Below, one piece after another: positions 1-61,157 of a stretch of DNA of 64,000 nucleotides. The stretch comes from Octopus sinensis. Taxonomy: Eukaryota. Within the stretch, counting starts at the first letter, position 1; each line of letters opens with the position of its first letter. The translations under genes and the position numbers were made by a program. The notes beneath the pieces are model-generated. The model saw only the letters and a list, made by a program, of their open reading frames with translations, was not told where the DNA came from and did no database searches. The DNA lies in NCBI RefSeq assembly GCF_006345805.1, contig NW_021832839.1:1-64000 (forward strand). Direction: 5' to 3'.

Positions 1-1051
1 GACAATTTTCTGGAGTGAATGAATCCAGGCGTGTCATCGAACGAGTTGATTTGGTCAAGAAAACCAAGTTGAGCCTCTTTGTAACTCGATTGGGTGACCG
101 ACCAGTTCAGCCAATCAACAAAAGTGAGAATAGGAAACGTATTGCACTCAAATTCCATATTGGGGTTAAGAAATACTCCTCTGGTCACGTGAATTATCCC
201 CGGATCCCTCGAAGAGTAGGGACCAAGATTAAGCATATGTTGGCGACTGTCATTGCTGTGAATATTGTCCCAAATTATCACTGGACGATTCATCATCTGC
301 AAATCACTGTCGACATATCACCGAGTTTATGCAGGATAAAGAATCTGCACTGATTGTCCTGGCAATGACCGAGTCCCCAGTCCACAAAATGTCTATTCCC
401 GACAGCAGACAATTCCCAATGGAGACCAAATAGTCCCAACATGTCTTTTTGTTTGCATAACTCGTACAGTACACTACGACTAAACAGACAGGGAAACCCG
501 TCGGACAGAACAGGAACAGACGAGGATTCAAATACGTGAATATTCGGTTGGTGAGGTCGACCTGAGCCCCCGCGAGTGACGGAAACACGGCTTGGTCCCT
601 CTCGCTCATTTTGAGGTCAATATCGTCGAAAAACAGTCCGAAAGAATTGCAGCCGAGTTGTTGGATCTGCTGATTAATTCTCCTTACTTGGCATAGTTTG
701 GCGAGTAGTTTTTGGACATCTTCTCCGGACGAGTAGACAATATCTAATCCTGGGGAAATGGCATAAATCAATTCCACATTATTTTCCGAACTGGTTTCGA
801 TCAGTTTTTGGAAATTGTCTGAGGAATGTGAGAAAAATACTTAGTTCTGTGTCATCGTAGAGAACTCTCCACTGCAGTCGATGTTTGGGGTCGTCCTTGG
901 GGGCGTAGATATATGTGTTGAGGTGTAGTTGGCCCATCCGATTGAACAGGGCCAGTCTTTGTGAATGAGTCCACGAAATTCCATAAAACCCTTTCAAATT
1001 AAGCCCAGAAAAACCTTCGACGATTCCTGAAAGATAAATTTGGCTATTCAT
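1..1051 (-). CDS. OGA: O-GlcNAcase, GH84 catalytic domain (3' part runs off the window)
   Basis: Spliced read GIVE|GFYG...NTYIYAPKDDPKHR...ELIYAISPGLDI...FGLFFDDID...FLFCPT matches the OGA family. Introns of 24 nt (991-1014) and 22 nt. Confidence 0.9.
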
Positions 1052-1200
1052 ATATCAACTAACTTTAAAAATGTATTCTAAAATAAATTATTTATTTTTT
1101 TACAATATAATTTTTTTAATTATTTATTATGATAAATAAATAAAATAACTTGTCACGTTATTCAGACATTTTTGCCTAAAAAACAACCAAAAGAATTGAT

Positions 1201-1682
1201 TTATTCTGGGTAAATACTCTCAACAGAACAAAATAACTGGTCGGAAACGTGGTCATCCCACAGCAGGCCATCAGTCGTGTCATTAAACCCAGAATCCCGA
1301 CTGCTGTCCTCCAAGGCTTTAAGGACTGAATGATCGTCGAATAAATCACAGTCAGACCAGGAGTCGTCAATCGTGGCACAATCCTCCTCAGGATTTATTT
1401 TCTGGAGACTGCCTTTGACTTGTTCAGGCGAGTGGATGAGACATTTCCTCACTTCTGCCGCCACTGACATCCAAAATCAAGAAATTTACATTTTTTAAGA
1501 CTATGGACACTTTTGGGGAGTGTCCCGATGTGGGTTACAGTGAAATCTCCTGGAATTGAACTGTTGTGGCCAAATAATAGTTCTTCGTCTGTTATTTCCT
1601 CCTTCTTTAACATATTGGACTTGAAAATATATCTCAGATCACAGGCGTTATCCACATCATCACACTCCACCACAGACTTCAT
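1201..1682 (-). CDS. Uncharacterised acidic protein (~150 aa)
   Basis: Two ORF pieces join in frame through a 26-nt GT-AG intron. Bounded by AT-rich spacers. No family recognised. Confidence 0.5.
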
Positions 1683-1768
1683 CGATATTATTTAAAATTT
1701 AAAATTACAACACAAAATGACTAATAAATAAATTTCGATATAATCAAATTCATTTTTTGTACCAAACT

Positions 1769-2511
1769 TCATAAATCTTTATTATTAAGGGAAAAATAAG
1801 GACAAAGGGGAGAAACAGCACACAAATGACACTTTGGAGAAATGGCCGTGCAAATAGACTGCCCAAAGCCTACGAGAACAGCATTAATCTGCCCCCAATG
1901 CTCTCTTCACTCAACCTGGACAAATACCTGGGAATATTTGCTTCCAACAGTCGACGTGTCTTTTCCGGATTTGCACAACCTCCTCCAAACCATCCAAGTC
2001 GATTGACAATTCTATGCACGTGTGTGTCCACAGCTATCCCCACGTTTTTTCCCCATGCAATATTCATGACTAAATTGGCCATTTTCTTGCCCACGCCTGG
2101 GAGTCTGCAGAGACCGTCCAATGTGTCTGGAATGTCCCCCTCTTGCTTGATCACATTCGTCACTCTCAGAATATATTCTGCCTTCTTCTACTGGACTAGT
2201 CAGGATAATTACGTTGAAAAAGCCGACTGGTTTTATTATGTTGGATAAGGCTGATTTGGTCAGTTTGGACACATTCTCGACATCCACTTTGGCCAAATTA
2301 GTCCTGAGGTTGTCCATTGCCTGGGCTGTCACTTGGTCTTTGGTTGACTGGACAACATGGCTCCAATGAGGGTTTGATAGCGGAAATCCTTGGGGGATGC
2401 TCTTTTATCCCCGAGCATGTGACATCCCATTGTGTCCACTGGACTGGTTATCGAGGACCTCATTTTGACAATCCCGTTATACTGGTGCCACCACACCTCA
2501 TTCTGTTTCAT
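1769..2511 (-). CDS. NTHL1: Endonuclease III-like DNA glycosylase
   Basis: [16 protein letters not shown], HhH motif [19 protein letters not shown] and the 4Fe-4S motif C-x6-C-x2-C-x5-C ([18 protein letters not shown]). TGA at 1769-1771. Confidence 0.92.
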
Positions 2512-2563: not shown

Positions 2564-3886
2564 ATGAGCAATTTTGAAGTGAGTGTGGAAAAAGTGGGGA
2601 ATATTCGAAGACATCGAGGCCGGCGTTGCATGCCCAGAGACATCCAAGACAACAAGGCCCTTCAAGAAGCCATAAAAACAGTATCCTCCACCACTAACGA
2701 TAGCTACCCGAAAACTACAACTTTGAAATAGAAAAGACACTCTGGCGAATAAGAGAACTATCAGCCCGAACAGTGGCCTTACAAATGCCGGAAGGACTAT
2801 TCCTCTTTGCCTGTACGATTGTGGATATCCTCGAACGGTTTGTAACCTGATGGAGTGCAGGTTCTCCCCCGGAGTGAGTGTAATCATAATGGCTGATGTG
2901 ATCTACGGAGCCTGCTGTGTGGATGACTTGACTGCCGAGTCCTTAGGCGTGGATCTGCTGGTTCATTACGGCCACAGTTGTCTGGGTGGGTATGTTTGGC
3001 CACTCTAGTCTCCGTCAGTCAAATGTCGTCTGTTCGTCTGCTGTATGTGTTTGTTGACATTGCTTTCGATATTGCCCACTTGGTGGACACTCTTCAAGCC
3101 AATTTCAGTCCCCGAGAGAGGATTGCTGTGATGAGCACAGTCCAGTTTATTAAAAGCCTTCATGTCTTATCGGCTTATGATTTTTAGGAGTTAAAGACTT
3201 GTCTGCCTCTCTATAATATTGTCCTGCCCAGAGAGAAGCCTCTTTCCTCGTGTGAAGTACTCGGCTGTACTGCCCCTCGATTGGAGGACTTGGATCTAAT
3301 CATGTCAGTCCTCCACTCATTTCCAGTTATGTGGGCGATGGAAGATTCCACAGCGAGGCTCTCATGATTGCTAACCCGAGACTTCCCCTCTATAAGTTGG
3401 GTGGGTTGATTCCTTGTAGTTACAGTCCCTATACTCGCACACTCACACGAGAATATTATGACTATGCTCAAATGATGAGTGTCCGTGGGAAGGATATTGA
3501 ATTGGCCTCATCCGCACATACTTTTGGGCTAGTTCTGGGTACTTTGGGGAGACAGGGGTCACTCAAAGTGCTGCAATGTTTGGCACAGACATTCGAAAAG
3601 GCTCGTCGGTCGTTCGTCCTTGTGCTTATATCAGAACTGTCGCCCACACGAATGGCACATTTCGGGGATGCTATTGACGCGTATGTTTGTTATGTGCATT
3701 CCCAGATGGGTACAGGTTGCCTGTCCTCGTCTTTCCATTGACTGGGCTCGTGCTTATGACAAACCACTGTTGACTCCCTACGAAGGAATGGTGGCTGTTG
3801 GGGCAACCCCGTGGCGGGAGGACTATCCAATGGACTACTATGCATCTGCCAGTTTGGGGCCATGGACACCCAACCATGCTTGTTGA
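2564..3886 (+). CDS. DPH1: Diphthamide biosynthesis protein 1
   Basis: Spliced: [12 protein letters not shown]...VALQMPEGL...[11 protein letters not shown]...HYGHSCL...[15 protein letters not shown]...GTLGRQGS...[11 protein letters not shown]...KPLLTPYE. About 7 introns of 23-25 nt. Confidence 0.93.
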
Positions 3887-3926: not shown

Positions 3927-6316
3927 TTAGCATGGAATGTGAGTCGACATGTGGCAATTTTTCTGCACTATGTACCCCTCTCTTGTGCAGTTTGTAGTCT
4001 GGGACTGAAAATGAGTTGTGTATGCTTTTGAGGAGGGCACAGTCGTCGAATTTGACCACATTTCGTGACGCGTCCACATAACTGGAGACGTGGGACACAA
4101 ACTAGTACTTTCTGTGCATTTCCAAGTCACCAGTCTCAACCCGCAGAGCAGTCCACACCAATTTGGAAGCCGGTTTGTTTATTCCTGCTTTTTTGTCAAC
4201 TTTTGAGTAAAAATCATTAAATTCGGAGTTTGTCCTCACAACTTTTGCATTTACGAATCGCTCAGCGAGAAATGTCGTGGTCGAATAGAGCAATGGAAAC
4301 TCCGTTCTTTTCTCCACTCTTTGAGGATTCAATTCATTTCTTGTCACTACAAGTCAATTAGTCAAGCACTTTGGTAGGGGGAATGTGGAAAATATTGAAG
4401 CATTTGACGATCAAACCACGCACAATCTCGGTAGTATTTCCGTGTATTTGCTGCTGGGTCATTCGCCTGTTCTTCCGAGGAGTGCGGAATCGAGTCCTCG
4501 CATGATAAACCCAAAAACAAGTCCAAAGAGGCTTGTTTCTTTTTATCTAGTCTTCCTTAAATGCAGACATACCAAAGAATGTGTTGCTGTAATATCGTGA
4601 CAGATTGGGAATTATGTCGGTGGCCGTGGATATGATGTCTGAGGGGATGTAATAATAACGAATGTAGTGCACTAGACCAGAGCCTGCGTACTGAAATGAA
4701 AGTGCATCCCCCATTTCATCGTAGAGTTTCTCAAACGTTCTAAAATAATTAAATTAGAAAAGCAAACACAGAATAAATTGATTCAGGATGCAGCCGAGGG
4801 ATGGAAATCAACCCCAAATTAAATATCTGCATTAATTAATGAAACAATTGCCTGATGTTCCAAAACATATCTTCCGATGGCAAATTGGGCAATATTTGTG
4901 CGGTCAAGACAGTCGACACAGTTAGTGCGAACAACCCCGGATTGTGTCATCTGCTCGTCCAGTCCAATACACTCGTAGTATTTAGTTCTGTCCACAATCT
5001 GGCGACTCAGCATCCTCAACCTTCCCAAGACCAGTTCATTAGGAGTACTGATAGACATAGATTAATACTTTTTCATGTCGAAATGTATGATTTCTATGCG
5101 GTTTCCAGACGGAAGGAATTGGTTGAGGTATTGTACAGCTGATTCGAGTTGATCCCCCAACTGGGACTCGTCGGAAGTCACATTTCTGCGAACAAGGTCG
5201 AGAACAATAAGAGGACATCCAAATCTGTACAGCAATTTATTAAAGTGGCGAGCAGTGAGAGTGAATCGAGGATCACAAACGGAGACTATTTTGAGGAAAA
5301 TGAAATTACGAGTAATGGGAGGTCTTTTCCCGGCAGTGTTGTAATCTTGCATCCAAACAAGTGGGACTGACCCCCTGATTTGAACAAAAGAAGAAATTCG
5401 GAGACCCACAGACCTGTCACACACAATATGTTCGATTTCTACTTGATTGGCTACATTGCCCTGAATGTGAGTAGCTAAACGTACTCGTCCGTCACTGCCT
5501 CGTCGAAGATACCTTGTGCCTGCAAATCGAGCCGACCTTCGAGCGAGGAGAGCAATGGACAGTGTGATTCCGTATATGTGAATTCCTATGTGAGCAGAGT
5601 GGCATACTGTACTCCCTGAAGAATCCGTGGACGAGGGTGAGACGCCAAATGGGACTACGGAGATGTTTAAGGAGAAATCCATTCCACATAAACTGTTTGG
5701 CAGGCTGGTTGTGAAGATTGTTGTGTTGGTAAGAATTGGTCATGTCGTAGGTGTAGGAAAAGTAAAAATGGCATGTCAAGTCCACCGAACTAAACAAATT
5801 GTACAGTCTGCAATATTCTCACAATATCACTTTTTCTCCGTCCTGCTCTGGACAATATTGAACGTGTTGGAAATGTAAATATTCTCCACATGGGCAATGC
5901 TGTACACTTTGTGGTGGCCAATATCCCCCACGTACGAACGCCTGGTCACTACAAGCATGTAGAACCCGTCCGCCAGTTTGATAAAGCCCAGAATTCCGAA
6001 CGCCAGAAGGGCTTCTACAACCAGTCATGGTCACTCAACTGTCTCCTCCCTCTGCCTTGAACTCTACTTTGTGTTTCCTGAGTACGTGGTTGAGTTCTCT
6101 GCGATTGAATTGTCGATCCTTGAATTTATTATATATATCTGTACCTCCATTGAGTCCAATAGCATGTCTTGGCTGACGTTTCTGTTGATAGTCAGTACCC
6201 AGTATTTGTCCTCCACCGTGCCCTCCGACCCCACACAGACCACATTCTGCGGTAATAACACTTTCGGATACGTTTATTGTCGAATATATTCGAATGCTTC
6301 TTATTTTCGAGGACAT
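3927..6316 (-). CDS. FIG4: Polyphosphoinositide phosphatase, Sac domain (FIG4/SAC3)
   Basis: [69 protein letters not shown] and the catalytic [12 protein letters not shown]. 3' end approximate. Confidence 0.88.
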
Positions 6317-7923: not shown

Positions 7924-9043
7924 ATGAGCTGCACGTTTAACATTCACTACGGATATTTGGAAGGAATTGTTCGGGGATTCAAATCAGGTCTTCTAACCAG
8001 GTCGGACTACCAGAATCTGATGCAGTCGGAAAACCTCGAAGGTACCCAACCTGTGCCCACTTAGACGTAAAACTCCACCTCCAGGAAACAGACTATCAAA
8101 CGGCCATTTCCAAGCTGGACGTGCTGGACGTAAACGAAATAGAAGAAAAACTGCAAGAAAGTTTTGTGACGCAATTCAACTACATTCGGAGTCACGCCAC
8201 AGGCCAACTCAGTCGGTTCCTGGACTACATAACGTAGTGGTGAGTGATAAGGCAGGTATGGGTACATGATCGAGAATGTCGTCCTCCTCATCACAGGCGT
8301 AGTACACGACGTCCCAATCGCCGAGCTTCTCCCAAAGTGTCACCCCCTTGGCAGTTTCCTCGAAATGGGGGCAGTTCACTTGGCTACCTCATCCGAAGAT
8401 TTGTACAGGAGCATAATGGTGGACACTCCTCTGGGTCGGGTCGCTTGATTCACGTAGGTCCCTACTTTGCGGGGTGTCTGTCGGAACAGGACTTGGACGA
8501 GACCAACATTGAGATTATTCGGAATGCCCTGTACAAGGCCTATTTGGAGGACTTTTATAAATATGTGGGGACTCTCGATTCAGTGACTCGTCAAGTGATG
8601 GAGGAAATATTGCAGTTCGAGGCCGACCGCCGTGTTTTTCTCATTACAATAAACTCCATCGGACGCACAGAAATGGCAAAGGACGACCGATTCAGATTGT
8701 ACCCCAACTGTGGCCGACTGTCCCCGTTTGGGTACATGCGCCTGGCCATGGCTGACACCTACGACCAGGTGCGCTCGGTGGCCGACATTTATGCGGTTGG
8801 TTGTGTTCCCGAGCGTAGGACTACCGACTTATTTTCGAGGATGGGAGTAAGGACTTGGAGGAAAAGTTGTTGGAACATGAGGTGCAACTGAATGTCAACT
8901 CCTTCATGAATCAGTTCAGTTTTTCCGTGTTTTATTCATTTGTCCGACTGAAGGAACAGGAAATCAGGAACATTAGTTGGATATGTGAGTGCATTACTCA
9001 CGGGAACACCAATAAAATGGACAATTACATTCCCACCTTCTAA
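7924..9043 (+). CDS. ATP6V0D1: V-type H+-ATPase V0 subunit d
   Basis: [75 protein letters not shown]. Introns 8042-8064, 8234-8255, 8435-8457 and 8796-8818 (22-23 nt). Confidence 0.96.
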
Positions 9044-11088: not shown

Positions 11089-11879
11089 TCTTTATTATAA
11101 CTAAAAACATTAGTAAAATATTTTTAAAACGTTTAACTATGATATAAATTTAAAAATGTCAAAATGACAAGGTCAAAAAATAGGATAAGAAAATGATTAA
11201 AGAATAAAAAACCGCATACTTTTTACGTACAATTCGTCAGTGAAGGGAGTTCTAATTTATAATCTACGCGTTTTCGTGAAAATTTGAGAAATTGAATATT
11301 CACTATTAATGATAATTGAATAAATAGTATGACTAATGATTTAGGACAACCATTCAATCAAAACATACAATAAACTAATAATTTATTAAATATAAATAAT
11401 TAGTAAAAAATAAGAAATTAAGCAGTTATAACGACAGAAGATTATTTCACCTTTTTAGCTGTTTCGACTCAACGAACTGGTTCTTGATATTTACTAATTT
11501 AAAAGGGCGATGCTTGTTTGTCCAAGGATATATTCAATTTTACTAATTTTATTACAAAATATTCCAAAAATGTTTATTAATAATAAAAATTTATCTAAAA
11601 ATAATATGAATTCTGTTTAAATGCGGATAAAACGATATAATTTTTTAAAAATATACGTCGAATTAGCGTAGACTTCTTTTTTAATCTTTCAAAATCTCAA
11701 AAGTGGTTTTACCTTGTAGAGGTCGAACTCGAGTTGTATTTTTAATAAAAAATCATCTTATTTTTTCATTGGAAAATCAATTCGTTAATTAATTCGAGCA
11801 AAAATCAATAACTAAGTATAAATAACACATTTCAGAGGTTTTTATTGGATTATGAAGAGAAATTATTTCAAAAATTAAA

Positions 11880-12420
11880 ATTTATGATAAGCCTGTTTAG
11901 ATAAAGGATTATCATAGAACGAACACTGTCGCATGGGAAGTTTCTTAAAGATTTAGCTACTTGACAAGGAAAAAGCTTTTATTTTTGAAAAGGGAAACTT
12001 TTGAGGTTCTTTGCATCTGACAAAGCTAAATTAAAAATGAAAACTATTGAATAAAACGTAGTGATTAAAATTTCAAGGCTGTCACAATTCTGACCATTTT
12101 GGTAGAGATAAGCTTCTTATTTCATTAGCTATGAAATAAAAAGACTGCAAGTCTGTAAAATTATCTGACAGTGCGTTCTTTGTCAGGCAAGATAAGTAAT
12201 TTAATTTGTAGTCTAAACAGTTAATGCGATATAAACCTTTTATTACACTATATTTGCTTATGCGCCACGGAACAGGTATATTGTTGATCTCGTGGATCTA
12301 CAAAGATACTCGGAAAAAAACGATTCAACGTAGACGACTTAGTAATATCAAGAAACGACATCGTTTTAAATAACAAAGTCCTTATTATATGACAATATAT
12401 CTGCGAAAATATATACCTTC
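11880..12420 (+). mobile_element. Degraded rve-type integrase/transposase remnant (Ginger2/KRBA2-like)
   Basis: Broken frames give DHFGRDKL, a CxxV remnant and PRNRYIVDLVDLQRYSEKND, resembling an HHCC plus integrase core start. Confidence 0.4.
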
Positions 12421-13329
12421 ACGCGAAAAAATAATCATTTTTATTCTGTCAAAGAAACTAAGGAAGAACTCGCAAATATACACATATCAATATTATCTAA
12501 ATTAAAAATATATTTTTTCTGGAGATCTGTGCCCTGATTTCAGAAAGAAGCTTTCCGCTTTTAAGCTTTTCCACTCTGCTTTGGTGGTACAGACTTTGGT
12601 GGTGAAGTTAATTTTTGTTATATTTATTAGTTTATTTGATTTTTATTACTAAATTCAAGTTAAATGTCATATAATTAACAATTCATTAGTAGTCTATTCC
12701 AATTTTTTAAAAGAATTATTAGTAGAAAAATTCTGTAGATTATTTGAAGAATACATAGAATCTATTTTTATCATTCAAAAAATACCGTCAGTGCGATAAC
12801 CAAATTAGAATGAATTTTGTAAACCGAATAAAAATTCGCGATGACAATTACCAGAAATGTTGAATTTAATGAAAGGAACAGTAATTGCTATAAGTAAAAT
12901 ACATATATAACCCCTTTAGATAATAATCCGGGATTAAATTTCTTTTCAAGTCCAAAAGAATAAATAATAACAAATATAAATGTTGTGACGAATATCCATA
13001 ACAGTAAAAATATATTTGCACATAAATTAGCGTTTTTTTCAGTAATAGAAAGAGAAATTCCAAATGTTACCAAATCTAGAATCTACAAAAATGTATTTGG
13101 AGTAATTAAACTGATAATGTGACGGCAATGGCTGCATCTTTTGATAAAACATATGTTTTGTTCAGCATAAATAGTCACGATTAACCTAGTATATCATAAA
13201 AGTGATTAATTCAGTGAATATCATTAACATTGTATTGTTCTATTATAACAAAAATTTAATATTTATTAATAAAACTATTTATTCGTTTATATATCTAATG
13301 AATTTTCAGCTTTACGGCTTATCAGTTCC

Positions 13330-13990
13330 TTTCAAGTTCCCGTCTTGCAAGGGAGTGGGCACCGGAGCTGAGGCTCTTCCTATCTTCAGCGAAGTCTGAC
13401 ATCTTGATCATTAATGAGACTAAGGTGAAGGAAGCAATGAAAGTGGAATTTGAAGGCTACATGTCTATTAATATCATAATATACCAAAAGGATATCACAG
13501 TCTTGGAGACGACTGTTCTTATGCTATGAGTGCTTATGATATGGATCTCTTCAAGAGTTTGAATCTACACTACCTTGGAGTAATAGTCAACTGCCATGGT
13601 TCGTACGCCGACCACGTAGCTAAACAGAAGAAGAGGATCCTCAAAAGCTTAACCACGTTCCATCTGGATCCGGAAACGTACATATACAAAACGTGTGTAC
13701 GACCAGTCCTCACATATGGCTACGAGGGCTGGCACGGTACGGAGGAGAGTGACTACCTTGTCGGAAAAAAACAAGACGTTTTGCATTGAAACTGGCTTAT
13801 GGAGTATAACTTGATGAAAGGCTAGAAAGGTCGCAAGAATCTTCTGTGCCCACGATCCGGATGGTCTTGGAGAAAAATTGTTGACGCCGACTATAATTGG
13901 GGATACGCATTGAAAGAGACACTTCGGTACCTCGTTTAATCTCTATGTTAACTTATTTTCTTTCGGTTTCTGTTTTTTTGATCAATAAAA
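13330..13990 (+). mobile_element. Heavily deleted LINE remnant (APE start plus RT C-terminus)
   Basis: ELRLFLSSAKSDILIINETK, YLGVIVN and IYKTCVRPVLTYGYEGW; AATAAA at the 3' end. Confidence 0.5.
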
Positions 13991-13999
13991 GACATTCCA

Positions 14000-15560: not shown

Positions 15561-16002
15561 ATTAATGCAATAGAGAGATGTGTTTAAGAGGAATAACTAT
15601 CTTTAACAACTCTCCACAGTCAACTACAGATACTACACTTCGACAAAAGTACCTCATTATCCACCAAAAAGCACTTTGGGCACAAATATTTTCCCCGAAA
15701 TGTGTGAAAGTGATAAACCTTATTATAATGATACAAACAGATGATTGTGAATGTTTGGATCGTTGTTGGGACAAATCAGAAAACCATATTCAGATTTTTG
15801 GCTTTTTAGGGTTTTGGAAATTGGTTTTTGGATAATAAAGGTTCCCACTTTTAAATTCATCAAAAGGCCTTTTAAATTTCTCTAGTCAATGCGCATATTA
15901 AATTGACATTTTATTTTTTTAATTTTAATTTTATTATTTGTTAATAAATTAATATACTCCTACAAAAAATTCAAAACAAATAAATTTCAAATAAAAAATC
16001 AA

Positions 16003-46950: not shown

Positions 46951-47168
46951 CTTGTTCATTATTTTCAAAATCGTTTAAAGAATTTTGACTTTCAATACAA
47001 CATGTTTCATTTTTGTGTTTTCAATGCTTAAAATATATTTACTTTTGAGAAGATCAAAAATATCAATTTCAAAATTTTTTTATATGATTTATTAAAAATT
47101 TTGAAACAATTTCTGACCCTCTCTTTAAATAAGTCTTCCCATGACATTTTTGTAAAAAGACACTAGAC

Positions 47169-49138
47169 CAGGGGTTCTCAAGTGCGGCCCTCGGGGCCGC
47201 ATGCGGCCCCGAGAATCTTTTTTGCGGCCCCGACTTCCAAACTTTAAAATAAATTTTGGATATAAAATTAATTGTAAATTAATATTATTAAAGATATATT
47301 TTAACTACACGTGTTTGTAAATATATTTCAGGTTGAGTATTTTTTCATGCCATCAAAGAAATATCGAACATTATCTCAAGAAAATAGAGAATTTCAAATT
47401 GAATGGGAAGAAAAGTTTTTTTTCGTTGAACTGAATGTTAAAGCTGTTTGTTTGATATGCAACTGTGTCATTAATTCATTGAAAAATTATACTATTGAAC
47501 GTCATTATAAGAAGCACTCCGAAATATACAATTTATATCTCGGAGAGTCAAGGAAAAAAAAACTCAATATATTAAAGACGTCATTTAAAAATCAGTCCTC
47601 AATATTTAAACCAGTGGAAAATAAGCATCAGTTATTAACGTCTTATAAAATTAGCCACCTTCTTGCTGTAAATATGAAACCTTATTCTGACGGAGAAATT
47701 ATTAAAACTGCTATTTCCATTTTTTGTGATGAATGTTGTCTGTCAAATATACAAAATATTGCAAAACGATTACCATTAAGTAATGATACTATTACAAGAA
47801 GAATAGAATGTATTTTTGAGGACCTTGCCCGTCAGCTAATCAAGTTCTTTACTATTAAAAATAATTTTTATAGAACATCGAAAGATTTTTTATATCATTC
47901 TTTTGCTGTCGACACGAGTAAAGATATCTCTGATACCGAACAAATGGTCGTATGCATTAGAGGTGTCACTTCGGATTTTAAAATTTCTGAAGAATTTTTT
48001 TCTCTTCGTTCATTAAAAGGCACTACAAAAGGAATGGATGTACTTAACGAATTCCTTGAAAGTATTAAAGAATTTGACATTGATCCTTCCAAAATAATTT
48101 CCATATGTACTGATGGGGGGGCGAATATGATTGGTCGTAATAAAGGGTTTCATGGACTTTATTCAGAATGGAGACTTGAAAAAAATCTTGATCCTATATT
48201 TTGGCAACATTGTATCATTCATCAGGAGAATATAATCGCAAAGTCACTTAAAATGCAAAATGTAATAAGTACGGTGTTGTCCATTGTGAATTGGATACGC
48301 GGTAAATCTCTCAATCACAGGAGATTTAAAAAAATGTTAGTGGAAATTGACACAGTGCATAATGATGTGCTTTACCATACCTTGGAGGGATCAAATAATG
48401 CTCAAAGATACAATTCATTTTACTTGTTTGAGTGAAAATAAAGCTAACGGTTCATTTGAAAAATATACTACCATTATCAGTCACCTTATTGTTGAATTTG
48501 AAAAACGTTCTAAGGTTTATTAAAATTAGTTTATTTTAAGAATTTTGATGAAATTTTGCCATCAATGAAAATTTTTGCAGCACCATTCAATATAGATCCT
48601 AAGAATGCTCCGCCATCACTCCAATTAGAATTGATAGACCTTCAATCAGATGTGCAATTTACCTCAGTGCAAAAGATTGAAAATTTAATGGAATTTTATA
48701 GTTCACTTCCCAAAGAAAAATATCCGAATATACTCATAAATGCTTATAAATATGCTTCAATGTTCGGATCCACTTATTTATGTGAGTCAATTTTCAGTAA
48801 AATGATTCACATAAAAAATAAATATCGAAATAAATTGACTGATAATCACTTATGCCAGCTTTTGCGATCTACATGTGCCTCCTATATTCCGTGTTATGAC
48901 AAATTAGTTAACAATTAGTTAAAATAGCTAACAATTTTTCGTTTTAGTTAACATTTTTCGTTTTAGTCATTTTCCTTTAATTAATTAAGACTAACTATCT
49001 CGGTTCTGAATAAAAAATGAATCTAAAAAAAAATTAGTTAAAAGTTAATGAAAGTTTTAATTTAATTTATTCTGCGGCCCCGAAGACAATGGTTAATTAT
49101 CGATTTGGCCCCGACGTTAAAAAACTTGAGAAACCCTG
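47169..49138 (+). mobile_element. hAT (Buster/SPIN-like) transposon, internally deleted
   Basis: TIRs CAGGGGTTCTCAAG / CTTGAGAAACCCTG. 8-bp TSD CACTAGAC (47161-47168, 49139-49146). GCGGCCC subterminal repeats. Transposase halves with CTDGG, HCIIH and FGSTYLCE. Confidence 0.95.
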
Positions 49139-49475
49139 CACTAGACCTTAAATTCAATTTCTTGTAAGAATTATAGACCGAAAGATTCGAGTTTTCAACA
49201 ATTCCGTCAAATAGATCAACTTTCGTTGGGTAAAATTACTCTTGGAAGATTTAATTATCCCAATATCCATGGTTAAGCAAACCAGAATTATTTTTAGTCA
49301 AAAAAATATTTTCATATATTCCAAATTCGTTTCGATATAGTGCGCAGGCCAGTTGTCAATCAATAGTAAAATTCGATTTTTGAGCTGTAAATCAAAATTA
49401 ACCAACAAATCCATAAATATAAATCCAGTCACCCAAGCTCATTGTGAACTATAGTAGAAAATGAATCATCTATAG

Positions 49476-50399
49476 CAGGGCTGGCCAACCCAAAACGTTT
49501 TTTTCGACTTGAGAGAAGAAATCAAAAGTTTTATGATGCATAAGAAAATGACATTACTGAATTAAATGATGAAGAATGGATGCTAGATCTGTGCTTTTTG
49601 GTAGATATAACCGAAAAATTAATCAATTAAACAAGGAGTTACAAGGACAGGATAATTTGATTACTAATGCATGCCATCAAGTCAAAGCATTTCGAATGAA
49701 ATTGTCATTGTTTGAATGTCAAATAAGAAATGGAAATGATCAACATTTTCCAACGCTAAATCAATTTAAATCAACAGCCATTGTAAAAATTTCTTCAAGT
49801 ACGCTGATGAAATAAAAAATCTTGCTGCAGCATTTGACAGTCGATTCTCGGAACTAAAAAAATATGAGAAATGTTTGAAACATTTTCTTCTCCATTTCAT
49901 GTTGACGTTTCTATTGTTTCAAATACTTTGCAGACGGAAATAATTGACCTACAGTGCAACAGTGAACTAAGACTGTTTATCCTACTATATCCAAAATTGA
50001 CTTTTTATAACAAATATGTGACTGCAGAAAAATATCCCAACTTAAGAATTTTTGCACAAAGAGTTGTAAGCTCCTTTGGATCTACTTACGTATGTGAATC
50101 ATTCTTTTCGAAATTAAAGTTTAGTAAAGAGATATAATCTTCTTTAACAGATAAAAACTTAGAAAACCAATTAAGATGTGCAACTAGTAATTGTGAAGTT
50201 GATTTGAAAAAATTAAGTGAAGATAAAGAAAAACAGATTTCTCATTGATACGTATAATTGACTGAATGCTATTTTATACTAATAAAATCTTATCTGTGTT
50301 GTTTTGATATCTATCCTTAGTATGTACATTATATGCGGCCGCGGAAAGGATTCCATTTGGACAAAGTGGCCCGCGATGCGATTTGGGTTGGCCAGCCTG
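49476..50399 (+). mobile_element. Non-autonomous hAT (Buster-like) retaining only the transposase 3' half
   Basis: TIRs CAGGGCTGGCCAACCC / GGGTTGGCCAGCCTG. 8-bp TSD ATCTATAG (49468-49475, 50400-50407). FGSTYVCESFFS motif. Confidence 0.92.
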
Positions 50400-50968
50400 A
50401 TCTATAGTCATAATTTCAAATACATCGAGGCATTTTTGGTCTTAAAATCATCACTGGTTTCAAATTATGGGTTCCGCTCATGTTTGAGCATATCATAATC
50501 GAGACACAATTTTTAAAATTGTTGTAAATTTTTTTGAATGTTTTGAAATAGCGTTCTTCTTCAGTAAAAAATATTTATTGTTTTTCTTGATTTTGTCTTC
50601 GAAATCCATCAGTTAGACGTTTGAACAAAATTTCATCATTTACTTCCTTATAATTAACAATTTCAGTTTTTTCTTCAAAAGTAAGCCGAGTATACCTTTC
50701 AAGAAAGGAATTGGAAGATTAAATTGTTATTAAATTCTAAATTTTAACCAATTTGCGAAGGCCAAGTGTATCTTCGAAACACAATTTGAAAAGAAAAGTG
50801 GAAATTAAGTATTTAAAATCACAAGCAGCTGTTATATCTCGATGGCTAGCATCATAGAAACAAATAAAGGTCTTATCAAAGTAATTAAAATGGTCTTAGC
50901 ATTTTGATGTAAATCAGCAGAAAGACTAAAAATTTGATTTAAAAAGCAAGTTTGACCAAATAAGCACA

Positions 50969-54400: not shown

Positions 54401-54577
54401 TCTTGGCTTATTTTCTTGTCAAATGAGTTACTCAAGGTAAACATAAAGTAAAAAGTGGAATTAAAGAAAATCCAACTTTAAGTTATTTTTAGTCAAAACA
54501 GTTAAATTCAGTCTATGTTAATTTTTTTTTATTCAAAAATAACAATTGTTAAATGATTATATTCGATACTGGAGTAG

Positions 54578-54887
54578 CTAAGAGTCGTTTGAAATGAGAT
54601 CGAGGAATTCTGTTGAATGAAAATTAAGTTGCACCTTTAAAATTGATATTTCCATCGCTATCCTGGTCGCAAGATTTAATTAGATTTCGACATTCTTCTT
54701 CTGTACAGCAGACACCCGCAAGATTAAAAACTTTGCTGAGTTCTCTGGCGTTTATTTTCCCGTTGCTGTCCAAGTCCAATTGGTCAAAACATTTTTTGAC
54801 ATCTAACAAAATGACTGGAAAAAAACTCTCGAGATCGGTTGAAATGAACTTTCTCGACTATTAGACATTAACCAAATACAAAACCAT
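54578..54887 (-). CDS. Two-EF-hand protein, copy B
   Basis: Essentially identical coding sequence to copy A. Confidence 0.75.
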
Positions 54888-55113
54888 TCAAAGATGACCG
54901 AAATATTTGACATTCTCTTTTATTCATGCTGAAGGTCTGAACAATGTATATTTCACTTATGAATTGACTTTATTTTAATAAAAATACACGTTTATATACA
55001 ATGACGCAGAGATTCATTGGTTGTGAATCATCTCGCTGAAACTAAGAGTGCTTAGAGCAAATGCGAATGAATGAACAAAGACTCGAAAACGTTCCAAATG
55101 ATGAGAACAGTGA

Positions 55114-56037
55114 CTATATTTTGCTAACTAAAACGAGAAAAGCAACTCCAGCCAAGGCAGAAAGCAATATTTGGAAAGTGTGTCGCATTCCCCCGACTTG
55201 GTGGGAGCCCTTTGTGAGCGGCCCGAGCATGTTTACAGTGCCGATGTATATGAACCCCCCGGTGCAGAAGGGAATCAAAACTCCCTCAATACGCGAACTC
55301 AAATTGCCCAAAACAAATGACAGGATGACGCCAAAAATGAAGCCCAGTGCCGTGACGAACTGAAGGAGTATTGCCTATCATAAGACATGGAAACAAGCCT
55401 GCTTTTTGGTGCAATTGGCGTTGATTAGACTGACAAAGTCCCCAATCTCGTTGGGAAATTCGTGGCACAGAATAGAAAATGACGAACTCAGTCCGAGAGA
55501 TGTGCTGTGCATAAACGACGCGCCGATGATCAGCCCGTCAGTGATGTTGTGCACAAAATCCCCTACGAGGTTGATGAATCCTTGCGCCTTCATTGAAATC
55601 TGCTCTTTCGCACTGTGCTCTGCGTCACTTTTCTCTTTCGTTCTGCGACGAATGGTTGTCGACTCCGTGACAATCGGCTCCGAAGGTTCCTCTGGGGCGT
55701 CGGTCGGGGATGCTTTGAGAGTCAAATTGAGGACTTTTTCCATAGCAAAAAAGCCATAGAGTCCCACTAAAATGAAATATCTGTTGTTGGCAGTGTTGGC
55801 GGTGGTGAATATTTCAGGCATCAAATGGAAAAATACGTCCGACAGCAACCCCCCGGAAGCAAAGGCGAGCAGAATCTACGAATAGGACATTATCCATGTC
55901 ACCTCCAAGGACCCGTCCCAGTTACTTTTGTTTACGCTCACGAAAATGAGGAGAAGTGCAGGCAAAATGCCGACTGTGATTGCTGCGAGAATTGCCTGGA
56001 CGATCGGGAAGTCGAGAAGGAGGTGGAGAGTGACCAT
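55114..56037 (-). CDS. ZIP metal transporter, copy B
   Basis: Intact frame with several amino-acid differences from copy A (NG/NR, LER/MEK, VS/IS, ES/EG). GC-AG intron at 55375-55398. Confidence 0.92.
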
Positions 56038-56547
56038 TGTAGACTGGCTGTTGAAAATTAAATTCTGCACTTTTCTACGATTATATATCTTTTTGAGAAT
56101 CAATAAAATAATTTAAATCAGCTCATTAGTGTTTGGGAGTTGTCGTAGAATGAATCAAATTAAAATTATTCAATCGCAATTACTCCTTGAATGGCTGATA
56201 ATTATTAATTTACTTTTACCCCGGATAAATTGTTCTCTTTACACACACATTGACAAATCTTGTTCAAAAATTCAAATTTCTTATATTTCACTACTCTTAG
56301 ATCATGACGTATTACTCGGAGTGTCGTTACTATCATTCCGTGTTCTGAGCTTTTTTCTTCAAAGTAATTTTTATTGGTAACTTTGATTAACAATCGCCTC
56401 AAAATTCACAATTGTCGCTTTCCTGTCCAAATAGTCAACCACCAAGTAGTTACTTCTATGCAGATAATCAAATTATTTGACAATAGTGTTTTTATAAATT
56501 GTTTGAGTAATACAACAAAAAAGCAACATCACAATTTGTTTACAAAA

Positions 56548-58062
56548 TCATCGTAAAATATCAAACGTGTCACCATCCTCAATCATTTCACTGCAAAATG
56601 TGCGCGGCGGAGACTTGATCGGTATTTCTTCTACGACCTGATCGTCCGAATTTACAGGGCGGTGGAATGTCGCATCAATCAGAGACTGCAAAGGCGTTTG
56701 TTTCCTTTCATTGGTCGTTGAATTGAGTTGACTATTCAGCGAAGGGAGGCTGTTGAGCATTGCGAGTGGCGTCGGCAATTTTTTAGAAACTTTCTGGATG
56801 GACTGCTTGTCTTCCATTTTTCGTTTCCTTGGCCGATAAATCGTAGGGACAGCCCGTTTATCAGGCACAATAAACGCATAGTTCTGCTGAATCTCATTTA
56901 TCTCGTCCTGAGGAGCCTGAGGAGTGGCCGGTGGAGACACTCGGTCACAGAGAATGCAGGGTTTCTGAAAACGAATAATCGCCTGCTTTCCCGACGACTT
57001 GCGTATTTCATGCTTAAGCAACTCCGAACGTGCCATGTCCACCACACAGCTCAAAATAGAACGAGGAAACTCATCAGAACTCCCCATTTGGGACGAAGGG
57101 GCCACCCAGTCGTACATAAGTTCGATCGGGGACTTGGAGCCGAGCATTAAGTAGACCTCCACCACCGAGAGCTGTCCAGCCTTGCCGACAGAAAGTCCTC
57201 CTTCCCACAGGGCAGTCACACTTTCGAGAGAACCAGAGAAATTGGACAAATTGCGACTCAAATTGTTGGTATTTTGGAGAATACTGGACGTGTGGGAGTC
57301 CGTGTTGTGCAGTCGAATTCTCCCAGAAGAGGACACCAGTTGGTATGCCACAGCACTCTTCCCACTCGGAAGGAACATCCTCATGTCCCCATTCCCCAAC
57401 CGTTCTCCCAACAGTTCGAGCAGCACCCCCATTTGCTGTCCGTGAGGCACTCTCAACTGCAGATTAGCCACAAAGCCACTGCGTTGGACAGTCAGGAGAG
57501 CCTGGACAGACCGAGGACGGAGGGACAACATCAAAGTGTCAGGAAGGAAACTTGAGAGGACAGTTTCGTGTTTTTTGAACAATTCAGAGAGAGCATTGCT
57601 TCTGGGCATTTTGACCTTCAAATACTTCTCTTTGTGGGGGATTCCGAGTCTGGCGAGTGTGTTTTTGCCCACGAGGATGCTCCGATTAAAGACCAGTCCG
57701 TTCAGGAACTTGAGGAAATGTGGAGAAGAGTCCACCTTGCCCAGTCGACGGTACAATTCTCCGTAGGCGACGAGCACGGAGACTTGGCGAATGTCGGTGG
57801 GGACATCAGACCCGAAGGAGACATGTCCATCCAGTCGACGGAAATTACGGAAGAAAAATAGTCGAATTTGACGGACACTTTTGGGGGGTCTTGGCCGACG
57901 TGCATAATTTATTCGTGCAGTCAGTTTGTGGAAGTCCTTTCCGTATTTGCACAAGAGTGAGTAGAAGGCAATTCGGTCCTCAGTGTCCCATATCTTGGCC
58001 ACCTTGGGAGGGGGGTCTGTGGTTTGTGGGGCAGTATCTTCCGTCTTGTTGACATCCTCCAT
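56548..58062 (-). CDS. CRAMP1: Cramped-like SANT-domain chromatin protein
   Basis: WDTEDRIAFYSLLCKYGKDF...KSVRQIRLFFFR...VLVAYGELYRRLG matches the cramped SANT region. 506-aa continuous ORF. Confidence 0.75.
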   Translation of the reverse strand: MEDVNKTEDTAPQTTDPPPKVAKIWDTEDRIAFYSLLCKYGKDFHKLTARINYARRPRPPKSVRQIRLFFFRNFRRLDGHVSFGSDVPTDIRQVSVLVAYGELYRRLGKVDSSPHFLKFLNGLVFNRSILVGKNTLARLGIPHKEKYLKVKMPRSNALSELFKKHETVLSSFLPDTLMLSLRPRSVQALLTVQRSGFVANLQLRVPHGQQMGVLLELLGERLGNGDMRMFLPSGKSAVAYQLVSSSGRIRLHNTDSHTSSILQNTNNLSRNLSNFSGSLESVTALWEGGLSVGKAGQLSVVEVYLMLGSKSPIELMYDWVAPSSQMGSSDEFPRSILSCVVDMARSELLKHEIRKSSGKQAIIRFQKPCILCDRVSPPATPQAPQDEINEIQQNYAFIVPDKRAVPTIYRPRKRKMEDKQSIQKVSKKLPTPLAMLNSLPSLNSQLNSTTNERKQTPLQSLIDATFHRPVNSDDQVVEEIPIKSPPRTFCSEMIEDGDTFDILR

Positions 58063-58189
58063 GACCACAAGACTTAACTATTTAATAATTTTATTATTTT
58101 ATTGAATATTATTAACAGGTTTGTTTGAATTTGTAATTACTACTGTCACTGTGATCATAAATGAGAAAACTTTTCACTAAAAATTGTTT

Positions 58190-59800
58190 TATACGTAAAT
58201 CACATAGCTGATCCCTAAGAAGGACGTGTGTGACTCCCCCAAGGATTTGAGGCCAATCTATGCCGAATTTATATAAGTTGACAACGAAATGTGTAAACAT
58301 AAAGTTGTCAGAGTATATTGATGCTTTCGGATAAGTGACAATCAACTGGGCACAAGAAGAATGTGCAAAAGAACAAGCCATAATCAATCAGATCATGTTT
58401 TCTTAGACTATTTGTTACAAAAGTCTGGACTTGCTTATTGGATTGTCTGCTTTATTCAGAGTCTTATTAACAAATGGAAAATACGATTGACTTTTGAAAA
58501 TAAATCATTGGGTCAAGTAAAAATAAGAAGAGGAATTTTGCAAGGAGACTTTGTCGCCACAGATCTTTGTGTTGGTATTGGACCCTTTGAGTCGAATGTT
58601 AAATGGAAAATGCCCGAAAGTAACAATGGGGAATCGGATACCGATACTTAGGAGTTCTTGAAGATATGAACAGTAATGTCCTTAAAAAAGAAATTATGGG
58701 GAAAATTTATAATGAGGCATCCACTCGGATTAAGACGGAATTAAACTCTGTGAATTTATTTAAGGCGATAAACGAATTTTCACTCTCTCTATATAAATGA
58801 TTGATATCGAGCCAGGGGAATTTGAACAAATTGACAAAAATGTCAGCAGAATTCTTACGGAGAGCCATATTCACATGCAACCGGCAAACAAAGAAAGACT
58901 ATATTTACCAAGAAATAAACTTGGAAGAGGTCTCGAGTGTGTCAGTAACAAATCTGAACGAATGCTATTCCAATTTTATCATGACTTGAAGCATAAAGCC
59001 GATTACTGCCTAAGAAGAGAGGGAATTCTACGGGTCGTCAATTCACAGAAAACTCACATTGCCACTATCGTAGAATTCATATCCCGAAAGTACAATATCA
59101 AAAATATAAATGAACTGACAATAACTAAATTGGTGGAATTGAACATGAATATCTAATGAGGCAGATTGAAACTAAGCCACTGCATTCTATTCTTTTCCAG
59201 TGTTTGAAGGACACTGAAGTTAATGAATCGCAGGATGGGTAGTTCATGGAAATAACTCGCCAATTAAGTTGTGGAAATTCGAGTGGACAGAACTATTTCT
59301 ACGGATACGGCTGTTTCAAACAATAAACCAGATATTTTTGTCCATGACAAGATGAGGAATACAATTACACTCATTGAAGTTGGGATTACCTCACAAAATT
59401 GCCTAAAGCAAGTTGAAGTGGAAAAGTTCCACAAATATGACCTTTGGCAAATGAATTAGGGGCGATTCATCGGGCTAGAGTGAAGATAATCCCTGTTGTA
59501 CTTACTCGGGATGGAATTGTCTCAAAATTCTTCAAAAGTAATCTGGATTCTATCGCAGTGGAAGACAGAGTGAAGGCATATATTCAAACACTCGTTTTAA
59601 GAAAAACATTGGAGAGTATGCAGGTGGAGACAAGACATGGAATATCGGTTCCCGGAGAGGAGCATGCAGTGATTGAATGTCAACCGAAGGATTCTTCTCT
59701 ACCAGGAATACGTGTACCGACTATGATAGTTGGGCATAAGAGACGAAGACTGTCCTAAATATAGATGCTTAAAAAAATGCTATTATAAATTTTTATTACT
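58190..59800 (+). mobile_element. Degraded, internally deleted REL-type non-LTR retrotransposon (same family as 37227-38135)
   Basis: IRRGILQGD, ERLYLPRNKLGRGL, NNKPDIFV...IEVGIT...EKFHKYDL, IIPVVLTRDG. RT YxDD core missing; frameshifts. Confidence 0.85.
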
Positions 59801-59844
59801 CAATAAAATTATTAACCTATATGTTAATTTGTAATTACTACTAT

Positions 59845-61157
59845 ATGTCACTGAGAAAACTGTTCACTAAAAATTCCAACCAACGCCAATCTCTACCCAA
59901 AAACAAAATAATTGTGTTTGATTCCGGCCCTGTCACAATTGACAGTGTGATTGGCTACGGTGATAAGAATATGTGTTAGTCACAGGCGGCTATTCGGTCA
60001 TTTTTGCTGCCAAACGAAAGAAAGGCAATACCATGGCCCTCAAACAGTCCAACGTGAACACGGAAGCCAATCTAAACAGCTGCATTATGGAAATAAACGT
60101 GATGGTTTGTCCATTTCTTCATCCCAGAAAAAGTGCAGTCATCCCAACATCATTAAATACGTCGACAGTCATTACACCAAAATCGATTCCTTTCGTTCAG
60201 AAGTCTTTCTTTTGATGGAGTTGTGCAAAAGTGCTGGTTTTGTTTATTTTGTAGAAAGTGTGTTTCAGTTGTTGGAGGAGAATGCAGTCAAAGGACTCAA
60301 AGACGACCTCATTCTTCGAATCCTCAGAGACCTTTGCAGTGGACTGTCAGTCCTCCACGACAACTCTCCGCCAATCATCAACCGAGACATCAAAGTAGTG
60401 TTTCCCTCGTGTCCAGGCCGAGAATGTGTTGATAAACTCAAAAGGAGATTTTGTCCTCTGCGATTTTGGGAGTGCTGTGTACGAGACTCCCCTCGACGAG
60501 AATATGGACATTTCGGACATTTCTCAACTGGAGGAAGAGATCGCCCAGTTGTTGTGTGTCTCACAGTCGCAGAGCCACCACCTCGGGGTACCGACCCCCG
60601 GAAATGGTCGATTTGTACAGCGGAGAACACATTTCCTGCAAAGCTGACATTTGGGTTGTGCAGAGTTGTTGATTCGACTAGGCTGTGGGGTGTCTGCTCT
60701 TTCAGTTATGTTTTGTCGCCATGCCCTTCCAAGAGAACAAATTGGCCATTTTGTCAGCCAAATATTCGTTTCCCAAACCCTGCAATGCCCTGTTTGAGAG
60801 TGTCATTGGTCAGTTCTGTGGTCACTCACTTCCGTAGGGGACTGTCTCCAGGTCTCTCCCGCGAGTAGACCAAGTGTGGGGGACATTCTCAACTGCCTTA
60901 AGACTTGCACTTTGTCGAAGAAAGGCTCGAAAAAAACTAGTTTTCGCTTTATAAAACAAAAATCCGTTGATGTGAATGTTTATTGGTAGTTTGATCAGAA
61001 GCAAGTCCCCGATGATGTTTTTGAAGCAGCTCCTTTTGATTTTCCTCCAAATCCGTGGCCTTTGGACGAATCGGAGTTTGTGGCACAGGATGAGGGTGGA
61101 CTCAACCCGTTTATGAACGAAGATGGATGTGTGAACGAGTCATTTAAAGATTCATGA
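59845..61157 (+). CDS. NAK-family Ser/Thr kinase (AAK1/BMP2K-like)
   Basis: Spliced: IGY|GGYSVIF...MALK...NRDIK|AENVL...LCDFGSA...YRPPEMVDLYSG...KADIW|AVGCLL. Tail carries DVFEAAPF and NPF. Confidence 0.9.

Follow-up and report, generated by a model that had tools for sequence, protein, structure and literature searches.

How small can the introns of an animal become? The question is raised by a 64,000-nt stretch of DNA (positions 1 to 64,000 of the forward strand of contig NW_021832839.1, Octopus sinensis assembly GCF_006345805.1; hereafter the window), in which an initial annotation, made from the letters alone, had picked out dozens of introns of 21 to 29 nt. Judged from the DNA and its homologues, genes in the window are interrupted by spliceosomal introns ~23 nt long. 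Introns of this size lie well under the textbook minimum for animal splicing and illustrate with how little sequence and room a spliceosome can work.

Genes with micro-introns and Pfam support extend from 304 to 61157 of the window, which has an average GC content of ~38% (33 to 46% across 4-kb bins). Gene models came from a purpose-written gene finder and were named via Pfam. The inventory comprises OGA (O-GlcNAcase), an NTH1-like glycosylase, DPH1, a FIG4/Sac phosphatase, an NK-type homeobox gene, V-ATPase subunit d, a bZIP gene, ATG8, phosphatidylserine synthase (PSS), an NWD1-like gene, a weak ENT transporter, a mitochondrial carrier, cohesin SA/STAG, two ZIP transporters, a Rho-type GTPase, a BRO1-domain protein, Rtf2, a WD40 protein, an orphan 504-amino-acid (aa) open reading frame (ORF), and an AAK1-like kinase. 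The NK-type homeobox gene, NWD1, cohesin SA, and OGA, together with a standard code in which TAA, TAG, and TGA all serve as terminators, bear out the original view that the host is an animal.

Micro-introns of the V-ATPase subunit d gene

In V-ATPase subunit d, removal of four segments turned five exon pieces lying in different frames into one 342-aa ORF. The spliced protein (PF01992) was 59 to 60% identical, over 99% of its length, to the V-ATPase d of many animals.

7924-9043, plus strand: V-ATPase subunit d gene, 342 aa, four micro-introns (ORF restoration, homology)
8042-8064, plus strand: intron, 23 nt, GT..TAG, phase 1; rank 1 of 204 variants; position common to Helobdella and Hydractinia
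8234-8255, plus strand: intron, 22 nt, GT..CAG, phase 2; rank 1 of 97; position common to Hydractinia
8435-8457, plus strand: intron, 23 nt, GT..TAG, phase 1; rank 1 of 204; position common to Hydractinia within ~2 aa
8796-8818, plus strand: intron, 23 nt, GT..TAG, phase 0; rank 1 of 118; position common to Helobdella

Boundary variants were scored against a profile of 60 orthologues. The only ties were 1- to 3-nt slides of the same length, and the intron listed was the sole GT..AG variant nearby at three junctions and one of two at the fourth. The same gaps appeared with no splicing assumed: when six animal V-ATPase d orthologues were compared with the raw DNA by ungapped tblastn, the exon matches were contiguous in the protein (40->41, 98->99, 157->157, and 269->270) and were spaced by 20 to 23 nt of unmatched DNA.

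We also mapped the exons of the Helobdella (annelid) and Hydractinia (hydrozoan) genes at fetched loci. Each of the four window introns lies within ~2 residues of an intron in one or both of these animals, and Hydractinia holds further introns that are not in the window gene. The common positions imply that old introns have shrunk, not that new ones were inserted.

Homology-anchored junctions in seven genes

Restoration of an ORF turned out to be a poor guide to intron boundaries. Whether we used deletions joining long ORFs, frame-junction loci, or a dynamic-programming gene finder with 14 control pairs, GT..AG could not be separated from control dinucleotides. Because any short deletion made close to a true intron puts the sequence back in frame, we dropped these tests in favor of homology-anchored ones, which cover 46 micro-introns in seven conserved genes (V-ATPase d, OGA, PSS, FIG4, the AAK1-like kinase, DPH1, and STAG). 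The STAG junctions were anchored with 32 database homologues and those of OGA, FIG4, PSS, the kinase, and DPH1 with the sequences of solved-structure homologues; the latter models were refined greedily and then put through the unconstrained variant test applied to V-ATPase d, in which all frame-preserving deletions within ±12 nt of a junction were scored, with any boundary dinucleotide and any length.

Splice removal restored a continuous conserved reading frame in all seven genes. Across 29 informative junctions, the canonically bounded variant belonged to the top-scoring set with a Fisher combined p of 1.5e-10. No variant scored better at 12 of the 25 pairwise-informative junctions, 21 of the 25 lay 5 points or less from the best, and at 19 the top-scoring removed lengths fell within 21 to 28 nt, with ends G[TC]..AG. 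With boundaries placed free of any dinucleotide assumption, 44 of the 46 anchored introns had GT and 2 had GC at the 5' end, and all 46 had AG at the 3' end. Intron density was ~1 per 55 to 80 codons. The earlier claim that removal of such segments restores conserved proteins was thus upheld. All five introns it had cited, the four of V-ATPase d and OGA 991-1014, proved correct, given the rank-1 results above and the repair of the OGA alignment described below.

A further ~45 introns, in twelve further genes (one in two copies), come from gene models alone, since the ORF-restoration tests could not discriminate.

1769-55902, span: ~45 model-only GT..AG introns, 18 to 41 nt, in the NTH1, NK homeobox, ATG8, NWD1-like, ENT, mitochondrial carrier, two ZIP copies, Rho, BROX, Rtf2, and WD40 genes

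Run without a length prior, the gene finder gave noisy models and missed V-ATPase d, which a version with a 20- to 28-nt prior recovered. Such a prior is circular as evidence of length, so the length statistics below are drawn from the homology-anchored set.

On the minus strand, the anchored genes are OGA, FIG4, and PSS. Left in place, the OGA segment 991-1014 breaks the alignment with human O-GlcNAcase; its removal converts GIVEGFSGLNLKGFYG to GIVEGFYG (compare human VEGFYG).

304-1051, minus strand: O-GlcNAcase (NAGidase domain) gene model, ending inside the domain, Pfam positions 6-203 of 295 (Pfam, PDB alignment)
991-1014, minus strand: OGA intron, 24 nt, GT..AAG, in-frame, stop-free (human O-GlcNAcase alignment)
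819-840, minus strand: OGA intron, 22 nt (gene model, homology refinement)
667-687, minus strand: OGA intron, 21 nt, in-frame, stop-free; takes out a 7-aa insertion relative to human OGA
474-497, minus strand: OGA intron, 24 nt, in-frame, stop-free (homology refinement, variant test)

In PSS, the alignment with human PSS2 over all six junctions had a single 1-residue gap. All six PSS introns were top-ranked, with at most one better variant at any junction, and the removed length was pinned to 22 to 24 nt.

17982-19119, minus strand: phosphatidylserine synthase gene model, N-terminus probably further upstream (Pfam; human PSS2 alignment)
19017-19038, minus strand: PSS intron, 22 nt; no better variant, length pinned
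18859-18881, minus strand: PSS intron, 23 nt (variant test)
18784-18807, minus strand: PSS intron, 24 nt, with an in-frame stop inside (variant test)
18646-18669, minus strand: PSS intron, 24 nt, with an in-frame stop inside; unique best of 183 variants
18504-18526, minus strand: PSS intron, 23 nt (variant test)
18366-18388, minus strand: PSS intron, 23 nt (variant test)

The PSS model (17982-19392, minus strand) lacks the N-terminal third of the protein and has a doubtful C-terminus, and more exons and micro-introns are expected nearby.

4500-6316, minus strand: FIG4/Sac-domain phosphatase gene, homology-verified part (Pfam, human Fig4 alignment); the C-terminal extension to 3468 is model only
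6015-6039, minus strand: FIG4 intron, 25 nt (weakly informative variant test)
5808-5830, minus strand: FIG4 intron, 23 nt (refinement, variant test)
5586-5607, minus strand: FIG4 intron, 22 nt; no better variant among 283
5461-5484, minus strand: FIG4 intron, 24 nt, in-frame, stop-free; takes out an 8-aa insertion relative to human Fig4
5286-5309, minus strand: FIG4 intron, 24 nt, in-frame, stop-free; unique best of 307 variants
5048-5068, minus strand: FIG4 intron, 21 nt (refinement; site poorly conserved)
4827-4851, minus strand: FIG4 candidate GC..AG intron, 25 nt; 12 points above its GT counterpart; none of 271 variants better
4740-4767, minus strand: FIG4 intron, 28 nt (refinement; weak variant-test support)
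4547-4572, minus strand: FIG4 intron, 26 nt; no better variant among 258

The C-terminal extension of FIG4 overlaps the DPH1 model on the opposite (plus) strand at 3468-3886. Past approximately residue 560, where homology support ends, the FIG4 model is probably over-extended.

The plus strand carries, besides V-ATPase d, the kinase, DPH1, and STAG genes.

59845-61157, plus strand: AAK1/NAK-family kinase gene (Pfam, PDB alignment, refinement)
59954-59979, plus strand: kinase candidate GC..AG intron, 26 nt (moderate support)
60105-60127, plus strand: kinase intron, 23 nt (refinement, variant test)
60237-60254, plus strand: kinase intron, 18 nt, in-frame, stop-free, the least certain; takes out part of a 7-aa insertion relative to AAK1
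60395-60416, plus strand: kinase intron, 22 nt; 33-point gain, kinase motif RDIKAENVL restored on splicing
60548-60572, plus strand: kinase intron, 25 nt (refinement, variant test)
60655-60681, plus strand: kinase intron, 27 nt; no better variant among 184
2564-3886, plus strand: DPH1 (diphthamide synthesis) gene (Pfam 1-302 of 302)
2681-2703, plus strand: DPH1 intron 1, 23 nt, GTATCCTCC...CTAAC.. (gene model)
2838-2860, plus strand: DPH1 intron, 23 nt (gene model)
2986-3008, plus strand: DPH1 intron, 23 nt; VHYGHSCL restored on splicing
3164-3187, plus strand: DPH1 intron, 24 nt (gene model)
3304-3326, plus strand: DPH1 intron, 23 nt (gene model)
3396-3419, plus strand: DPH1 intron, 24 nt, in-frame, stop-free; takes out an 8-aa insertion
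3681-3705, plus strand: DPH1 intron, 25 nt (refinement)

Refinement of DPH1 against the distant archaeal Dph2 was over-fitted, cutting SCLV from VHYGHSCLV and creating a 15-nt GC..AG intron, and just two of its changes were kept. DPH1 intron 2681-2703 (plus strand), GTATCCTCCACCACTAACGATAG, resembles a U12-type donor (/GTATCCTT) and has a perfect CTAAC branch box; as one case, the likeness may be due to chance. It is the sole resemblance to the U12-type signature (/RTATCCTT donor, TCCTTAAC branch motif) among the anchored introns, which otherwise lack it.

32783-36401, plus strand: cohesin SA/STAG gene, ~1,098 aa, ~14 introns, 10 of them resolved (Pfam, homologues)
32984-33009, plus strand: STAG intron, 26 nt (homologue-based variant test)
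33665-33687, plus strand: STAG intron, 23 nt; rank 2 of 799 variants
33812-33833, plus strand: STAG intron, 22 nt (homologue-based variant test)
34013-34036, plus strand: STAG intron, 24 nt; top-tied
34242-34264, plus strand: STAG intron, 23 nt; 6 bits under the best variant
34553-34577, plus strand: STAG intron, 25 nt; rank 1 of 181
34668-34691, plus strand: STAG intron, 24 nt (homologue-based variant test)
35083-35107, plus strand: STAG intron, 25 nt (homologue-based variant test)
35300-35321, plus strand: STAG intron, 22 nt; rank 2 of 200
35825-35848, plus strand: STAG intron, 24 nt; rank 3 of 193

At the STAG junction 33193-33219 (plus strand), homology calls for removal of 26 nt and the sole GT..AG segment is 27 nt long, a mismatch that could reflect an assembly indel, a GC donor, or a noncanonical site. 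A third GC..AG candidate, 33184-33209 (plus strand), is one of several poor options at an ill-fitting STAG junction.

Lengths and residual splice signals

The anchored introns were 18 to 28 nt long (n = 46; median, 23; mean, 23.5; standard deviation, 1.7), and 88 of 91 introns, the model-only set included, were 30 nt or shorter. Phases 0, 1, and 2 were represented by 21, 12, and 13 introns, respectively. Multiples of three were not avoided, as 15 of the 46 introns had such a length. Seven of these 15 had no in-frame stop (minus strand, 991-1014, 667-687, 474-497, 5461-5484, and 5286-5309; plus strand, 3396-3419 and 60237-60254). Ordinary gene finders read through introns of this kind, adding 6 to 8 false residues, and our own had read through all seven before homology exposed them. 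Annotation of such genomes calls for intron models down to ~18 nt and for homology to catch the in-frame introns.

The initial annotation had described GT...AG as the only signal in these introns, a description that the anchored set does not support: YAG acceptors, a weak donor bias toward AG|GT.A.G, an A at +17, and an enrichment of CT[ACG]AY were also seen. At the donor, G was invariant and T was present in 95% of introns, followed by A (41%) or T (34%) at +3 and G (43%) at +5, and the last two exon bases were A at −2 in 52% and G at −1 in 50%. A was enriched at exon −2 and at +3, and G at exon −1 and at +5 (p = 1e-3 to 2.5e-5). The constraint on positions +3 to +6 is only weak, much as had been proposed. 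At the acceptor, position −3 was C or T in 45 of 46 introns (p = 1.6e-10). AAG acceptors do occur, as had been noted, but they are rare, the one example in 46 being OGA 991-1014, the case already cited for them. Position −4 was G in 45% of introns, and C was almost never the first exon base.

The reported absence of a polypyrimidine tract held up. Pyrimidines made up 58.5% of positions −13 to −4 and 56.6% of the intron interior in the anchored set, so no distinct tract is present, and the one conserved pyrimidine is that at −3. T content was 37% in introns versus 28% in coding sequence.

The strongest signal inside the introns was a positional one. An A occupied position +17, counted from the 5' end, in 25 of 46 introns against a baseline of 21% (p = 5.6e-7), and the model-only set gave the same peak (20 of 45, p = 0.017). 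The peak stayed at +17 in introns of 22, 23, and 24 nt and became blunter when counted from the 3' end. In 40 of 46 introns an A lay at +16 to +18, often within CTNAY, and branch-like CT[CAG]AY motifs were enriched relative to shuffled sequences (z = 3.4 and 3.9).

Affinity of the host

The host is probably a dicyemid mesozoan. All 56 STAG matches were bilaterian, the best being from a chiton, and no cnidarian or myxozoan was among them. In a neighbor-joining tree of V-ATPase d from 45 taxa, the window protein was sister to Platyhelminthes in 64 of 100 bootstraps; arthropods took that place in 25 and Cnidaria in 1. The branch leading to this protein (gene at 7924-9043, plus strand) was ~4 times the median length in the 45-animal tree, as in a very fast-evolving lineage. 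No long intron is required anywhere in the window; STAG, for example, spans 3,619 nt for ~1,098 aa. Neither the spliced window proteins nor the intronless 504-aa ORF was found in protein collections, which points to a source genome that lacks annotation or is missing from them.

The published Dicyema japonicum genome has a flatworm affinity, 36.7% GC, 198-bp exons, and 6.2 introns per 1.16-kb coding sequence, or ~5 per kb (PMC6736024). Its mean intron measures 38 bp, and it was deposited as an unannotated whole-genome shotgun record (PMC6736024). The ~38% GC of the window and the lack of its proteins in databases fit that genome.

Proposed mechanism and alternative readings

Taken together, these observations make it very probable that the segments are ordinary U2-type introns (GT-AG, rarely GC-AG) that have shrunk to a near-uniform ~23 nt at ancestral positions and that their host, most likely a dicyemid, is a parasitic bilaterian whose genome is compact and evolves fast. 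As for the mechanism, the A near +17 is a candidate branch point. We suggest that the spliceosome chooses its branch site by distance from the 5' splice site, fixed at a steric minimum of ~16 nt, and that a YAG 4 to 10 nt downstream of the A is taken as the acceptor. Intron length would then follow from a ruler that starts at the 5' splice site, rather than from a polypyrimidine tract. The weak AG|GT.A.G complementarity that remains points to a continuing contribution of U1/U6 pairing. The initial annotation had spoken of a length-measuring spliceosome, an idea that gains support from the narrow length range and from an A fixed relative to the 5' end.

We know of no experimental demonstration, in any animal, of branch-site choice by distance from the 5' splice site without U2AF or polypyrimidine recognition. 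A low probability attaches to the proposal that the window represents either a host lineage without described micro-introns or a spliceosome measuring ~16 nt to the branch site without such recognition. Authors in the field still regard branch-site choice in introns of this kind as unsettled (PMC13644364). The window itself contains no Rfam family, be it rRNA, tRNA, or small nuclear RNA (snRNA). The further suggestion of shrunken U1/U2 or of lost SF3/U2AF parts runs against the canonical U2 snRNA and U2AF1/2 of myxozoans with equally short introns (PMC13644364).

Several points weigh against shrunken U2-type introns in a dicyemid. The A stands at +17 in just 54% of introns, and about half of the intron census depends on a gene finder with a 20- to 28-nt length prior. 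The candidate GC..AG introns 4827-4851 and 59954-59979 depend on 12-point alignment gains over GT alternatives, measured against human homologues, and at three or four STAG junctions (near 33193-33219, 34900-34954, and 35186-35224) no fitting GT..AG solution was found. As for the host, a single-gene V-ATPase d tree is open to long-branch attraction, and the mean length of 23.5 nt is below the published dicyemid values of 26 to 27 nt and nearer the myxobolid median of 22 nt.

One alternative keeps the same kind of intron but makes the host a parasitic cnidarian, a myxozoan of the myxobolids, the other animal group with known introns of 22 to 27 nt. Thelohanellus kitauei and Myxobolus rasmusseni have a reported 22 nt (PMC13644364), close to the median of 23 nt here; the donor and acceptor logos show a similar reduction, and the A likewise tracks the 5' end. 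We nevertheless consider a myxobolid host unlikely. Published mean introns in myxobolids of 240 to 507 bp imply many long introns (PMC8855578), of which the window needs none. None of the 56 STAG matches was cnidarian or myxozoan, and Cnidaria were sister to the window protein in 1 of 100 V-ATPase d bootstraps, although this is weak, single-gene evidence. The T. kitauei genome is an annotated one, so that its proteins are expected in databases, yet the orphan 504-aa ORF has no homologue there.

It also seems quite unlikely that the host belongs to an animal group with no micro-introns on record, which would make this a third independent origin. The absence of a close relative from protein databases and an intron length slightly off the published dicyemid figures are what one would expect of such a lineage. 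A survey of 51 metazoan genomes, however, found introns of this type solely in myxobolids and Dicyema (PMC13644364), and all the features measured here agree with a dicyemid genome.

A different possibility is that the segments are eliminated from DNA, like the internal eliminated sequences of ciliates or in dicyemid somatic DNA elimination, and are not spliced from RNA. Eliminated sequences in Paramecium are of similar size. Circular DNA contigs occur in a Dicyema sp. assembly (PMC6543705). Yet the segments end in GT..YAG rather than TA..TA, retain an AG|GT donor context and a branch-like A, and match the positions of spliceosomal introns in other animals, and a comparison of Dicyema cDNA with genomic DNA places removal at the RNA level (PMC2222250), all of which renders DNA elimination very improbable. 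An origin of the segments as GT..AG strings arising by chance, as errors of assembly, or through pseudogene decay is scarcely credible, for although the ORF-restoration tests by themselves failed to set GT..AG apart from control dinucleotides, such an origin would have to produce the combined p of 1.5e-10 of the anchored test, seven restored conserved proteins, uniform lengths, a positional A, and a YAG acceptor.

Other features of the window

An inverted repeat of 1,711 nt, 98% identical between its arms (38225-39935 and 54523-56233, 14.6 kb apart), looks like a recent inverted duplication. In each arm lies a complete zinc transporter gene of the ZIP family (KE4/LIV-1-like), interrupted by the same three micro-introns of 27, 27, and 21 nt. 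The intronless 504-aa ORF at 56548-58062 (minus strand) has the highest coding score in the window; it has no Pfam match, none of 5.8 billion proteins is homologous to it, and it may be a lineage-specific gene. The Rho-type GTPase model at 40889-41302 (minus strand) covers Pfam positions 1-93 of 162, and more exons and micro-introns are expected nearby. Gene-poor, AT-rich stretches (GC 32 to 35%) at 11100-16000, 27200-31700, and 43300-50900 lie between dense gene clusters, and outside them there is ~1 gene per 2.5 kb. Small ORFs in the gene-poor stretches (for example, 13526-13789) had no Pfam match.

Comparison with known systems

Micro-introns in the window are real but already known from dicyemids and myxobolids, and each main feature has been published, so the finding is not new. 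Very short, uniform introns were described in Dicyema in 2007 from genomic DNA compared with cDNA (Aruga, PMC2222250) and were extended to 40 genes by Ogino et al. in 2010, according to the summary of that work in PMC6543705, and to whole genomes in 2019 (Zverkov, PMC6543705; Lu, PMC6736024); their lengths cluster at 26 to 27 nt (PMC2222250, PMC6543705). In an orthonectid, I. linei, the median intron is 57 bp. The ultra-short introns of myxobolids, reported in 2026, arose convergently and have reduced splice-site logos, medians of 22 to 27 nt, and A residues whose distance from the AG grows with intron length (Hadjez, PMC13644364).

Among nonanimal systems, ciliate introns (Paramecium, ~25 nt; Stentor, 15 to 16 nt) share narrow lengths near the physical minimum, GT..AG ends, and the lack of a polypyrimidine tract with those of the window. 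Ciliates differ in being protists with reassigned stop codons, whereas stops in the window are TAA, TAG, and TGA. Neither a ciliate code nor TA..TA-bounded elements were found in the window, where the ends are GT..AG and the gene content is metazoan. In Paramecium, introns whose length is a multiple of three are depleted unless they carry a stop, whereas here 15 of 46 have such a length and 7 are stop-free. The nucleomorph of Bigelowiella natans (18 to 21 nt) offers a parallel in extreme, uniform miniaturization within a reduced genome, but it is the nucleus of an algal endosymbiont, more AT rich and with shorter introns than the window. Giardia and Trichomonas, in whose introns the branch site is fused to the 3' splice site, resemble the window in that its branch-like A lies just ~6 to 8 nt from the acceptor; they differ in having few, longer introns and a strong 3' motif tied to the acceptor, whereas in the window a weak motif goes with an A tied to the 5' end.

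The two animal groups come closest. Myxobolids (Henneguya salminicola, Thelohanellus kitauei, and Myxobolus spp.) have the same range of medians (22 to 27 nt), a donor reduced to GTa, and a weak A further from the AG in longer introns (PMC13644364), but they are cnidarian hosts with many long annotated introns, in contrast to the bilaterian affinity of the window and its lack of need for long introns. Dicyemids (Dicyema acuticephalum, D. japonicum, and Dicyema sp.) agree with the window in bilaterian host, GT..AG ends, reduced donor consensus, and similar GC content and exon size, and differ in published means or medians of 26 to 27 nt compared with 23.5 nt. To these systems the window makes modest additions, namely, a high share of stop-free introns whose length is a multiple of three, two candidate GC..AG micro-introns, and the precise +17 position of the A.

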